Source of the DNA: Saccostrea cucullata
Taxonomy: Eukaryota
Length of the DNA stretch: 64,000 nt
Reading direction: 5' to 3'
Assembly (NCBI RefSeq): GCF_032062105.1
Contig: NW_026931525.1
Span: forward strand, 248,001-312,000
A program made the position numbers and the translations under genes. Below are positions 35,681-43,029 of this stretch, piece after piece (within the stretch, counting starts at the first letter, position 1; each line of letters opens with the position of its first letter). Below the pieces are notes generated by a model, which was given only the letters and a program-made list of their open reading frames with translations, was not told the DNA's origin and did not search any database.

Positions 35681-36895
35681 CATGTTAAAGATGAAGCCTT
35701 TTTACATGTAGTGGCACAACTGGTATCCATGTGAATTTCGACGGAATGTTGGAATGTCTGTAAAAACTACATGGATATTGTTAATCAGAAACTTTTGCTT
35801 CTTTTGAATATTAACTTCATTCTACTTAATTGTGTATACAGTAAGAATGATTTTAAACAAAATGTTTTTGCAAATGACCAATAAAAAGGTAGATTTTACA
35901 AGTACCATTTTAATGAAAGAAGTAACAGTCTTTATGATGTTAAAAAAAGCCTGAACTTTAATTTATCGCAGGGAAAATTATTTGCTCAATTTAAGTGTAT
36001 TTTGAGACACTTGAAAACATATGATTAATCAAGATGCGCACATTTTGTCAAAAACACCCTTTAAATGCGTGAATCACTACATCTGATATTTACAGAAGAA
36101 ATCCCATTATATCTATATAATAACAGTCTTACCTGATAAGCTTCCTGACTTTTGACCTTGTCAACCTCCATATCTCGGGATGGACGAATCTCTATCTCCC
36201 GGAGAATCACGATATCCAATCTTCAAAGGATCTACGTCATCAAGTGTTGACTTAGAGCACAAAATGGTCTAAATCAAAAGTAAGTGTTTGCTTACTTCAT
36301 ATTGTCCCTTTTTGTCTAATCTTTTTATCGATTGGACAATGATATGCACTTCAGATGTAGAGGTTTAATAGACAAGTACCATGGTTCTTCTGGTGATATC
36401 CCCAGGTAGATTGTCACTACTTGAAGACTGTATCTCATTTAGAATTGAATCAAGAATACCACACAGCGTTCGGAATTAGGTCTTTAAAAAACTTTTTTTT
36501 CATTCTCTAAATATTTAAAAAAAAATTGTAAAGGGGTGAGTAAATTTTGCATATATAATCTAACTTTCAACAATGTTTCTTGCATGACGACATGTTTACA
36601 GCAAGACATCAATAACTGGATTAAGCATTATTTTATAGAAAATATCTTTTCTTTGTATTAAAACAAATTAATGTATTTTTATTTTTCTGATATTTGTGAT
36701 GATGCTTCAGAGGATGCTTATCATCGTTTCTGTTTGAAATCAGTGCCACAGTGTTCTCTATCTTTAATCAATTTTTTTTAATCGTCACGTTTTCTTTCTA
36801 AATTGTAATTTGTACTTATGCACATGTAATAGTGTGACCTTAGCGTATCACGATCCTCACCTGAGAACTATTATATTCCTAGCCTCTCCTTGACC

Positions 36896-39800
36896 ATGTC
36901 AACAGCTCTCACAGTGGTGGCGTTATTGCTTTGTGGATCCACATTACAAGTTTCAGGGGTGGATCCTGTTTCTACCGCCTGTATTCTGCAATGTGATTTG
37001 TCTTTTGGTGCTGATAATGAAGTGGCAGGCTGTGACTGTAATGCTTTAAGAGGTGAGAGGCTTTCAAATTTAATTAATATCATACATTTCTCCTGTCACG
37101 ATATCAGAATTACGGCCCTTTTCAAAATTTTAAAATAAAACAACAATTAAATATAGAAATACCATAAAATTAGAGTTTCTTTATAAAAAAAAAAATTAAA
37201 AAAAAAAATTAAAAAAAAAACTAGCACATGGAAACTAGCAAACAATAATTTCTTTAAATGTACATGCATTAAATTAAGCATGAACCTCCTTTGTTTGAAT
37301 TTCATATACTAGTAAGAAATCAAAAAGTTCAGACAATCTCATTAAAACTAAAGCAATAAAGATTTGTTAACAGGGTGTAATTTTGAACCCCTGGTATTCA
37401 AGAGTTGGGATCAGGTACCTTGGAGGGGTAAGGATCCCCTGTTGACTAGTCACACTCGCCGTAAGCCTCGCGCATTGATCGAGTAATCAGAACATTACGT
37501 AGTCAAATTTTATTCAATAACAAAGTCCATACAATAAGGCCATTCCAAGTTTTTTCTATGTTTAGCGTCCACCCATCTTTCAAAAACCTACGTACCTATT
37601 CGCAAAAAACACACAGACCAAAAAAGAAAACACAGACATTATAGTCATAAAAGTAAAGTCATTCAAAGGATTTGATTTCAAAAAAATATGTTTTCTCCTT
37701 TCTAGATCTATACTTTAGAAAAATCCATGTACTAAATGCTCAAAATATACCAAATATGAAAAATTGAAGACAGATTATAACAGGACATGATAGAATTCAA
37801 AGATTTCGACCAGAATAATCAATATCGGGTCTTCTGATTTTGTTTGTTTTTTCTGATATTGGGTGTCAAAATCCAAGGCGCACGTGGACGCTAAACATAG
37901 AAGAAACTTGGAATGGCCTAAGTATGAAACAAATTAGCCTAAGTTCGATCCTGTGATAGGTTATTTTCTTGTCTGAAAATACATGTAAAAAAGTTAACAT
38001 ATTATACATTACTAAAATTAGTAGCAAATAATAAAAATTAAACTTTGTTTAATGTTTTTACCTGCAAGAATATAATTATGACATTTAATGTAGAATTAAG
38101 TATAATTGATTTCTAATTGATTTCTAGTTTAGATTTAATAAAAGTTTGTAATTTTTGCACACATGATCCCGCCTCTGATGTTTGAGAGGTCCGTGTTTTC
38201 TCTGCTCCTGACTTGTATTGTTTAGTGGATTTTTGAGTTCGAACTCTGTTAATTGTATCCTTATATTTCATACAGCAAAATGTGACAAATTGTGTGTTTT
38301 AGAATTCCCAATTATTCTGTAAAAGTGGCTTCTTTTAACAAAGTTAATTGATTTAAACGTTAAGAGACAACACTTCCTTTCATGAGTTTAACACATCTAA
38401 TTCATATTTGGATATCATAGTAGTTAATTATAACATTACAAACCCTATGATAAACGTGATGACTCTAACTTTTCTATCGTCAACTTCACTTACTTATGTA
38501 GCAATATATACCCTTATCACCTGCAAAAGGGGTTTATGTCTCTGAGTTTATTCGATACGCACGGGCATGACAAACAATTTGACGAAACAGAATAGCATCA
38601 TTCTTGTTTGATGTTTAAAATCCACATTTCGCAGGTTCTTTGTTCGAACATTGACCTTGTTAGCAAATGCAATTTATAATAAAGTGGAATGCCGACTGAC
38701 GTTTTTCATACTAGTCAATGATTTGTCTACGGATTTTCTAAGAGGCTCGCTGAGAATGTGATCTGTCAATAGGGAATGTTTACTCCTTCATGGCATCTGA
38801 TCCCACTTCTGTATTTTTAAATGTCAGTGTTTCTCCATATTGATTTGTATTGTTTCAATAGACTTCTGAAATTGTCTAGTATCTCCATATTTCATTCAAA
38901 TTATCATTTCCGATTTTATTTTTTCTAATTTTCTGGTTTTGCTATTTATATGTTTATATATATATATTTTTCATTTTCTTATTTATTTTGTTTGCTTCAT
39001 AGAGGCGTTATTTTAGGGGGGTAATTGAATTACAATAAGAAAAAAACAGCCCTCTTCAATGGAATTAGTAATCTGAATTCCACTTTGCTATAGCGTATCG
39101 TGGTTGATCTAGTTGTTTCGCTGGGTAGCTGTAAACTGTATGTGTCCTTTTTCTAACCTGATTCGAATAATTGAAAAAAGGGGTACTTGCATATTTTTTT
39201 TTACAAAAATAATGAAGATATAGTGAATTATATAAAAAAATAATTTTAAAAAGGGGAAAAAAAGAGGTAATTGAGTTCTTATAAGCAAAATTAATATCAT
39301 CAATTAACAATAGTTACTCATATTATAAGACACTAAAATATCCCGATGAACTTGAAATATTTTTAACGAAAACCTACGTACAATACATATGTGTGAACGA
39401 GACATGATCACGTTCCCTCGAATAAACTAGAGGATGGATTAGATGACTAGGTGGAGTAAGCATCCCCTGTTAACCGGTCACATCCGCCCAAACCCTATTA
39501 TTGATCAAGTAGAAGGAAGATTCCGTAATCAAAAGTATAAAACAAAGGCCTTACAAGGAAATTGAACCAAATCGACCAGATAGGGTATATCTGCGAACAA
39601 GGTCATTGTATAGACAAAAAAAGGAAGTAATAACTTAAAAAGAGTTGTTGAAATCTGGCACCAACTTATCTGCAGTAAACTGACTCTGTTTAATAAGTTA
39701 TCGCACTCAGAGCATGCTCCTGAGTATCGAATAAGCTGAAAGTTGTACGAACCATATGCAGATGAATGATGATAGCATTGATAAGGAAACTAACGATAAA

Positions 39801-40585: not shown

Positions 40586-43029
40586 TATTCAATAAACGCT
40601 GTTATAAGTTCATCGTTTGTTAATTTTTTTGTAGGAATTTGCTGTGCAATTTTTTTTCATTTTTCATCGTCTCTTTTATCACATATGATTGTTTGGTCTA
40701 CATGTATGTCTATCTTTCCTGAATTTATAATAAACTTAAATTGTATTTAAAATGAAATGTCACGTTCAAACGGTCAAATGTTAAAGCTAAATTTGAAGGG
40801 CAGTATACCACAGATATTAAAACCATCAATGGATAGGATTTTTAATACTATACTTTAATTGTATTCACGAGATGATCGACAAGTCATTTAAAAGACGTTA
40901 TCTTTAAATTTAAGCATGCATGTGACTTTGTCCATAGAACCCAGTGCTTTTTATATGGATCAAAATTCAAATTGAAAGTAGATCTAAAATATCAGATATT
41001 GTTCAACGGTCCAATTTTTCTGAAAATTCGCACATATATTAAGTAATTAACTTTTTTAACATCAAAATATCCCATTGCTAATCATTGCAATAAAACTTTT
41101 TTAAAATACCCTCCAATTGCGTACTGTTTTCTCTTTTGAAATTGTTGTAATTGTTATGATCTGTTCTGTAAAGAAAATTGGGAGAAGATGACTGGTCTAC
41201 AGTAACACTGTTATCTGTATCAACTCAGTATAATTTAATGAACTGTTCGACTGCTGACAATCTAGTTTCTTTTTCCTCTTTTTAATCTATAGATCGACTC
41301 ATTTTCACTCCTTTCGTGCATTTACTATAGGAGAATTTATATTAAACATATGCAATTACCAAAACATAACTAAAATTGCTGCCAGAATTGCTGCCAAAGC
41401 AAATGTTAACATGTGTTGTTGAAAAATAAGCTGTCTTTGAATGCAATTAACGTAAAAGAGAAAAATGAAAATCGGTAACGCACAGACGAAAATGAGCAAA
41501 TTAGAGAGCAGCTTCAATTAAGATAACTTTCATGGAACTTGAAAATTACCCGAAACAGTGAGCAAAAGTCCTGGTTATTGACAGAGATATTCACATATAA
41601 CTAATTAGAAGTTCTGTCTTAGGGTACATTGCTTCACCAAGACCGTAAATCTTTCAATTATAGTGTAATATACTTTTCAATCTTGTCGTAAATGTCACCG
41701 GAAACATGTGTTGCTATGAAGCTAGCATGCCAACGTGGCAACGGTATAACGCTTGCTTTTTCACGGTATGTACTAATAGTTTACAAGATGTTTATCGATA
41801 TTGGGAGGAAGCTGATAGAAATCTCGGAAAAATCTGTAGCATCATTAACTCCCTGCTGAAAGAGTTGTTAAAAATACATCCAATTCTAGAATTTGAAACG
41901 AAACCCAAGATTTCTTTCATGGCTGCCAAATGTGTATAAATTTCGGCAAAATCTATCAATCTTAATGTTTAGCATTAAAATACAAGATACCACGTGATTA
42001 TGTATATTCACAAAACTTTATGGTCAATTCTTTACATCTGGTTGGTGATAGCACGAAATTTTCATCAATCATTAAATTTGTAATTTGAATTTCAATGGAC
42101 TTCTATCTGGGAAATATGTTATAAAAATCAATTATTCACAAAGCAATTTGTTAAAAGAGGTTGTTATACGAATATTAAAAAGACACTCAAAAAACTGCTT
42201 TTGCAAGTGGTAATTATATTAAAATGTACCCGTATGTGAGACTCGTCATGCAATGGCGATCTAAGTCAATATAAAAAAAAAACAACTACCAAAACAGGAG
42301 TAAAAAAAGCAGTAGCTAAATTGACTGGATATCGTCTAGTAATTGAATTGTCAATAACCCATTATAGTTATTTTATTGCGCGAAGAAAATTGACACATCA
42401 AAATTATATAACCATTAATTGATTACTTTAAGTAGCACAGATTTTATCTCGAGTTTTATCGACAACACCTGCAATACACATGATAAAAAGGTAGCTAGAT
42501 AAATTAATTGGAAAATTTTAAACACCATATAAATGAATATTGTGTGATTTTTATTGTAGAAAGGACGTGGAGATAAAAGTTCTTTTCAGATCTTTTTATG
42601 AAAAGCTAATTGCGCAGAAAAATGAGTTTATAACTTCGATATATGGGTCAACTTCATGGGTCAAAAGGGGTAATAAAGGGTTCATTTCAAGAGTGCAAAA
42701 ATAGACTCTGGAATTGACAGAAATGTTTTCTCGATGCTTTGTCTATTTATTTTCACTGACTAAGATGAATGGGTGGTATTATGTGAAATGTATGGTAGTT
42801 GTCTAAAAAGCAAGATTAATTTGCTAAAATTTGAAGAGATTGGTAGGCTCTCGTCAATTTTTCAGTGTTCAAAAATTGTTTGGGCATTTGTCATTCGAAG
42901 CAATTATTAGAAAGTACTCACATCTGAATAATATCGTTGTGTTTGTACATAATATTCTTATATATTTTATAACATTCACATAATACCCAAGTGGATGTAG
43001 GCCAAAATCTGTCCACTTTTCTAAAGTTA

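Follow-up and report, generated by a model that had tools for sequence, protein, structure and literature searches.

A conserved gene of the hooded oyster predicts a secreted, amidated, cysteine-rich peptide precursor belonging to a mollusc-wide family

In the biosynthesis of amidated peptides, a convertase cuts the precursor, a carboxypeptidase trims the product, and the residue before a Gly is amidated. The classical multi-copy neuropeptide and prohormone precursors have, besides a signal peptide, a short conserved peptide that ends in Gly and basic residues, with tandem copies set between Lys-Arg. Here we describe LOC134232859 of the hooded oyster, Saccostrea cucullata, which lies in a stretch of 64,000 nucleotides (the window) of contig NW_026931525.1, positions 248,001 to 312,000; all coordinates below are those of the window and refer to the forward strand unless stated. 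It is a three-exon gene predicted to encode a secreted precursor of 117 residues. Like the classical precursors, it codes for both of these parts, with Gly plus basic residues at the end of the short peptide, and relatives of the oyster gene share the tandem copies between Lys-Arg. Unlike them, the oyster gene has one copy, only monobasic upstream sites, a mucin-like linker and a second Cys module. With a probability of about 0.6, we consider the product a secreted precursor of the prohormone or pheromone type, with a 27-residue peptide ending in a Pro-amide as its probable active part. A signalling role had been called plausible in an earlier, sequence-only reading of the window and now appears to be the best explanation.

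The one informative name among the relatives of this protein is "putative pheromone precursor", given to a protein of Aplysia californica (NP_001191460.1, UniProt Q06AD3, P0031). Like the oyster precursor, it has a signal peptide, an N-terminal module (N-module) of the form C-x3-C..C-x-C, a Thr/Pro linker and a C-terminal module (C-module) of the form C-x3-C-x8-C-x-C. It ends in Pro-Gly-Lys-Lys where the oyster protein ends in GRK, and all eight Cys align. A profile made from oyster sequences only matched it at 5.6e-05 and the family profile at 7.7e-27. The two proteins differ in sequence (33% identity), in the absence of a His-rich run from the Aplysia protein, and in the N-module loop, which is 19 residues long in Aplysia and 12 in the oyster. 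NP_001191460.1 may be Alb-1; supplements of related work say only "Alb-1-like (maybe)". Alb-1 is reportedly an albumen-gland protein, proposed as a water-borne pheromone by Cummins, Degnan and Nagle in 2008, a study cited in PMC3484142. The nearest described peptide of similar build is the conotoxin pl14a, a venom peptide acting on ion channels, with which no sequence kinship is shown and which serves as an analogy only. The oyster peptide differs from it in being acidic and in its loop lengths. The toxin, of the J-superfamily and framework XIV, is 25 residues long and amidated at its C-terminus; it is largely helical, and its four Cys are bonded I-III and II-IV (PMC4278219).

The gene model for LOC134232859 is correct. 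The sequence-only reading had spliced it together from two open reading frame (ORF) fragments and called it hidden; the gene is real and already annotated by NCBI, uncharacterised rather than hidden. All the features placed in that reading, from the TATA box to the AATAAA, stand in the window at the coordinates given for them. The exons were searched one by one, the query for exon 3 being its natural open frame (40364-40582), and P0001 was taken to represent the two exons joined. Both exon translations, together with the split Ala codon, are the same residue for residue as XP_062570819.1 (P0001), titled "uncharacterized protein LOC134232859 isoform X2" [Saccostrea cucullata]. The peptide read earlier from the DNA, with its C-x3-C-x12-C-x-C and C-x3-C-x8-C-x-C modules, seven His in 13 residues and GRK end, matches as well. 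Both a sequence search and a family profile search find a single copy of the gene in the assembly of 1.17 Gb. An exact look-up of P0001 on contigs gave no match.

A TATA-like box, TATATAAT, is found at 36114-36121; it is identical in S. echinata and degenerate in Crassostrea, and its function is presumed. The predicted non-coding exon 1a (36145-36279) would start about 30 nt past this box and ends at a consensus donor, AAAAG/GTAAGT (36279/36280). Exon 2 (36883-37052) opens behind a TAG/C acceptor (36882/36883) and carries a 13 nt leader, the ATG of the 117-residue product (36896), a predicted signal peptide (36896-36958; hydrophobic core at residues 3-14, KD 2.3) and the N-module, C-x3-C-x12-C-x-C (36980-37039). 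Intron 2 (37053-40388) is a phase 1, GT..AG intron between a G/GTGAG donor (37052/37053) and a CAG/C acceptor (40388/40389). The coding part of exon 3 (40389-40585) holds the His-rich run (40409-40447), the Thr/Pro linker (40451-40501) and the predicted mature peptide (40493-40573), residues 88-114 of P0001, which has the C-x3-C-x8-C-x-C pattern and Pro as its last residue. There follow a Gly-Arg-Lys amidation and carboxypeptidase signal (40574-40582) and the TGA stop (40583-40585), with a proximal AATAAA (40591-40596) five bases past the stop.

RefSeq isoform X1 (P0005, 142 aa) uses an alternative 5' exon segment (36343-36405) with an in-frame upstream ATG at 36343 and a donor at 36405/36406. 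Its first 25 residues are encoded from 36343 and joined to exon 2 at 36883, and because the X1 protein joins there, this acceptor is independently fixed. The 25-residue extension has no counterpart in the extension of the Crassostrea protein (P0007). Lacking protein conservation in Crassostrea, it is therefore most likely 5' untranslated region (UTR), which would leave the 117-residue product as the meaningful one. Exon 1a is compatible with isoform X2, which has no upstream ATG.

Orthologues were found in S. echinata, C. virginica and C. gigas/angulata. In Crassostrea, contigs derived from RNA show the orthologue spliced at the two positions of the S. cucullata model. The Logan contig L004 encodes an intact C. 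gigas/angulata orthologue of 128 residues, and compared with the genome locus (L003) both introns are gone at homologous places, including the phase 1 intron after the first module. Both are likewise absent at those places from contigs L005-L008, which come from other runs. The 5' UTR of L004 has no DNA match in the window, and homology of exon 1 was seen only in the genome-to-genome alignment. At its start (positions 1-495), L004 also carries the end of an unrelated Lys/Glu/Arg-rich ORF upstream of the 5' exon of the peptide gene. Neither the 3 kb genomic flank upstream nor the window contains this ORF; the segment reflects either chimeric assembly or transcription that reads through from a distant gene.

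We calculated the ratio of non-synonymous to synonymous change (dN/dS) separately for each exon. Between Saccostrea and Crassostrea, synonymous sites are saturated, with a proportion of differences (pS) of 0.64-0.84. The corresponding non-synonymous proportion (pN) falls from 0.26 in exon 2 through 0.19 in the linker to 0.10 in the last 30 codons, which encode the C-module. These values show the signature of purifying selection on the gene. The last 18 residues, the segment HPHHLNHHF and all eight Cys are identical across the four oyster species. Judged from these alignments, the constraint is concentrated on the C-module and the Gly-basic end.

We scored a profile of the four oyster proteins against 1.8 billion representatives. 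At E<1e-3 it recovered 39 proteins, of which 13 also pass E<1e-10; the family profile matches P0001 itself at 1.5e-25. All named relatives are molluscs, from ten gastropod genera (Haliotis, Patella, Gigantopelta, Littorina, Babylonia, Aplysia, Elysia, Lymnaea, Physella and Bulinus) and ten bivalve genera (Saccostrea, Crassostrea, Pinctada, Argopecten, Mytilus, Solemya, Mya, Dreissena, Sinanodonta and Potamilus). By these sequence matches the family spans gastropods and bivalves. The sequence-only reading could place the peptide in no named family and had proposed cysteine and GRK conservation in related species as a test. In the 20 full-length members, the terminal Gly and all eight Cys never vary, nor do a Gly-Gly and an Ala (a GG-x-AC-x-C core), and a mollusc-wide family can now be named as the home of the gene, with the Aplysia protein as its only named member. 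The C-module, with its LC..Q.GG.AC.C core, is the most conserved part of the family. Its x8 spacing is invariant in all members, and 38 copies have a mean column identity of 65%, with C, L, C, G, A, C and C invariant. The N-module, C-x3-C-x(5-22)-C-x-C after the signal peptide, keeps only its four Cys in 24 copies and has 25% column identity. Since the two modules align weakly (hhalign probability 59%), they are compatible with an old internal duplication. N-terminal hydrophobic cores, the basis for the predicted signal peptides, were present in all members checked. The His-rich run noted earlier does contain seven His in 13 residues, and such runs are also present in members from scallop, pearl oyster, mussel and abalone; in the family as a whole they vary, are often missing and are not universal.

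Searches of Pfam with the exons and 20 family members gave nothing above noise, and those of the ESM Atlas only sub-threshold, unrelated clusters. The family profile had no match among all PDB chains at E up to 10, and the fold searches for the family with Foldseek and VIA-align wide were empty. A literature search on the gene and on the family identifiers and motifs found nothing relevant. By its sequences, the family as defined here is mollusc-wide, barely described and without a Pfam entry, and LOC134232859 is a new member of it. Dreissena polymorpha, the zebra mussel, encodes several paralogues on one chromosome (P0030, P0034, P0055 and P0056); the oysters have a single copy. Solemya velum P0019 resembles two family genes fused in one model.

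The C-terminal amidation signal of the earlier reading is genuine and conserved: Gly followed by Lys or Arg, or by the protein end, stands after 39 of 43 C-type modules. Four relatives known from environmental transcripts (P0010, P0015, P0017 and P0026) have two to three C-modules, each ending in Pro-Gly-Lys-Arg, and several of these modules are preceded by Lys-Arg or Arg. Their sequences show the build of a multi-copy amidated precursor, suggesting that some relatives are true multi-copy prohormones. Because of these relatives and of the pattern after 39 of the 43 modules, we take the C-module as the probable active amidated product. Cleavage at two ALR sites, as suggested before, is weakly supported. 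A basic residue is kept both after the N-module and before the C-module in the four oysters and in scallop, and about half of the family lacks one before the C-module. There, the oyster precursor has a single basic residue, Arg87; Lys or Arg is found at this place in oysters but not across the family.

We propose the following route for the oyster precursor. The signal peptide would be removed near residue 21/22, and two disulfides would form in each four-Cys module, pinning a short CxxxC helix to the CxC segment that follows; we infer the pairing C1-C3 and C2-C4 by analogy. The Thr/Pro linker would be O-glycosylated. A carboxypeptidase would take off Lys117 and Arg116, and peptidylglycine amidating monooxygenase would turn Gly115 into the amide of Pro114. 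In oysters a convertase would probably also cut after Arg87, and perhaps after Arg52, to give the acidic 27-residue Pro-amide peptide (P0001:88-114). Outside the cell, this peptide would serve as the ligand of a receptor, being either a hormone or neuropeptide or a water-borne cue. The His-rich run and the N-module, itself poorly conserved, would be accessory parts, and metal binding by the run would be at most an accessory role since it varies and is often missing in the family. AlphaFold models predict a helix over CxxxC in both modules, and for the C-terminal peptide (pLDDT 74.5) this helix leads into a Gly-Gly turn and then a CxC segment in extended form. The acidic character of the modules, as stated in the sequence-only reading, holds for both peptides, with three D/E against one K/R in the C-peptide and five D/E against one K/R in the N-peptide.

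Several observations count against a signalling precursor. No RNA runs of S. cucullata are in the sequencing-run listing. Conservation of the monobasic sites that precede the modules does not extend across the family, and many members may therefore stay one intact protein of about 10 kDa. The multi-copy precursors P0010, P0015, P0017 and P0026 come from an environmental JGI sample. The full-length AlphaFold model is poor (pLDDT 60, pTM 0.27). In the text and available supplements of two oyster neuropeptide surveys the motif was not found, and a mucin-like Thr/Pro linker with a His run is unusual among neuropeptide precursors. The Aplysia "pheromone" label is an annotation only, not traced to any experiment.

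We weighed four other explanations. The strongest of them, though unlikely, is that the protein remains uncut, as a small secreted glycoprotein of mucus, egg coat, cement or shell matrix, or as an extracellular Zn/Cu binder using its His run and Cys pairs. In half of the family no basic residue precedes the C-module, the Thr/Pro linker resembles that of a mucin, and a Mytilus trossulus relative was auto-named "mucin-5AC-like". The invariance of HPHHLNHHF in four oysters, with His runs also in scallop, pearl oyster, mussel and abalone, would likewise suit such a protein. However, the constraint peaks at the C-terminal 27 residues and the amidation signal, while the His and Thr regions vary in length or are absent. 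The multi-copy relatives with dibasic flanks show that the C-module is releasable, and it is not obvious what an amidated end would do for a matrix protein. Much less probable is an antimicrobial or toxin-like peptide with a defensin-like, cysteine-stabilised helix. The sequence-only reading had drawn this analogy from the CxxxC and CxC motifs, and a helix is indeed predicted over CxxxC in a phylum that makes many Cys-rich host-defence peptides. The cysteine-stabilised alpha-beta (CS-alpha-beta) defensins also have CxxxC on a helix and then CxC, but the likeness is one of motif only. They carry three or four disulfides per domain, a beta-sheet and a positive charge, none of which is seen in the oyster peptide. 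Each oyster module has four Cys rather than six or more and thus two predicted disulfides, the models show a helix and no strand of at least three residues, and neither the C-peptide, with its three acidic residues to one basic, nor the N-peptide has a net positive charge. Membership of the CS-alpha-beta defensins was rejected on disulfide number, sheet and charge. Pfam gave no defensin or toxin match above noise, and a single-copy, slowly evolving gene is unlike typical immune effectors.

Slightly less probable again is an insulin-like hormone of two chains, in which the N- and C-modules would be joined by inter-chain disulfides and the His/Thr connecting piece cut out. The order of parts fits, running from signal peptide through Cys chain, basic site, connecting piece and basic site to a second Cys chain; in oysters the basic residues at both sites are conserved, and the weak alignment of the two modules would agree with it. 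The relatives with one N-module and two to three C-modules, or with no N-module (P0010, P0015 and P0026), do not fit such a pairing of chains. Nor do the poor conservation of the N-module (25% column identity) and the single-chain model, which shows no confident packing of the modules (pTM 0.27). Finally, the lack of a listed RNA run for S. cucullata might have allowed a chance pairing of two ORF fragments with no gene at all. This idea is refuted by the RefSeq identity, the orthologues in four species, the spliced Crassostrea complementary DNA contigs, the purifying selection and the mollusc-wide family, and we give it practically no weight.

At the 5' end, the promoter and 5' exon block (36054-36453) has 88-100% identity to S. 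echinata (L012), against 40-80% for the intron sequence that follows it (36454-36813). With C. angulata the block aligns at 73% identity. The donor at 36279 and its surroundings are without change in both species. This conservation supports the promoter and the predicted non-coding exon without proving which donor is used. A TGATAAG (GATA-like) motif and TGACCTTG are located at 36134-36168, just past the TATA-like box, unchanged in S. echinata and C. angulata; TGACCTTG was recognised by eye as the reverse of the nuclear-receptor half-site CAAGGTCA. Within exon 1a there is an upstream ORF of 30 codons (36180-36272), and its ATG is kept in S. echinata and not in Crassostrea. In intron 2, a 36-nt inverted repeat (97% complementary) surrounds 311 nt at 37537-37919 and looks like a miniature transposable element. 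ORF fragments resembling transposons were seen at 34138-34368 and 43383-43845.

At the 3' end, the proximal AATAAA is kept in S. echinata and absent at the same place in Crassostrea, where transcript contigs continue for about 1 kb. Further downstream lies a single-copy non-coding block (41201-42965) that exceeds the nearby coding exons in conservation, with 92% identity to S. echinata and 73-84% to C. angulata. Its core (41401-41900) is 96-100% identical to S. echinata and 84% to Crassostrea. Coding potential was rejected for this block, which lacks codon periodicity and is interrupted by stops in each frame; so was a known RNA family, for want of an Rfam match. It may be the distal 3' UTR of the peptide gene or a nearby regulatory element or enhancer. 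The former is possible because the Crassostrea transcript contig L005 reaches into the block, ending within a part that matches window positions 41334-41519 at 88%. A second conserved non-coding block (32865-33973) is found about 3 kb upstream, with 87% identity to S. echinata, and its part 33195-33809 has 83% identity to C. angulata.

Elsewhere in the window are two divergently oriented ORFs, at 2023-2418 on the reverse strand and 14891-15292 on the forward strand. They have in common an FSI[ED]EILKP motif and an end made of PAWV[YF] and 11 further residues, which we take to be the engrailed EH1 and pre-homeodomain motifs. The two ORFs may be engrailed paralogues; Pfam returned no match for these N-terminal exons. 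The conserved non-coding blocks could belong to the regulatory landscape of these engrailed-like ORFs. A run of N at about 30184-30330, seen as X in the ORF list, is an assembly gap or a masked stretch.

LOC134232859 does not represent a new kind of system. More tentatively, at somewhat less than even odds, the 27-residue, two-disulfide Pro-amide may be an orphan signal of gastropods and bivalves that lies outside mollusc neuropeptide catalogues, with a possible part as a reproductive or aggregation cue in broadcast-spawning oysters. The idea of a released cue is in line with the "pheromone" label of the Aplysia relative. Twenty genera of "uncharacterized" database entries are hereby linked into one family, with a core motif that persists from limpets to freshwater mussels. 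The reproduction, settlement and physiology of oysters matter economically, and the peptide signals involved are only partly catalogued. LOC134232859 provides a concrete candidate that can be synthesised, predicted to be small, amidated and disulfide-locked, making receptor de-orphanisation and behavioural assays directly possible.

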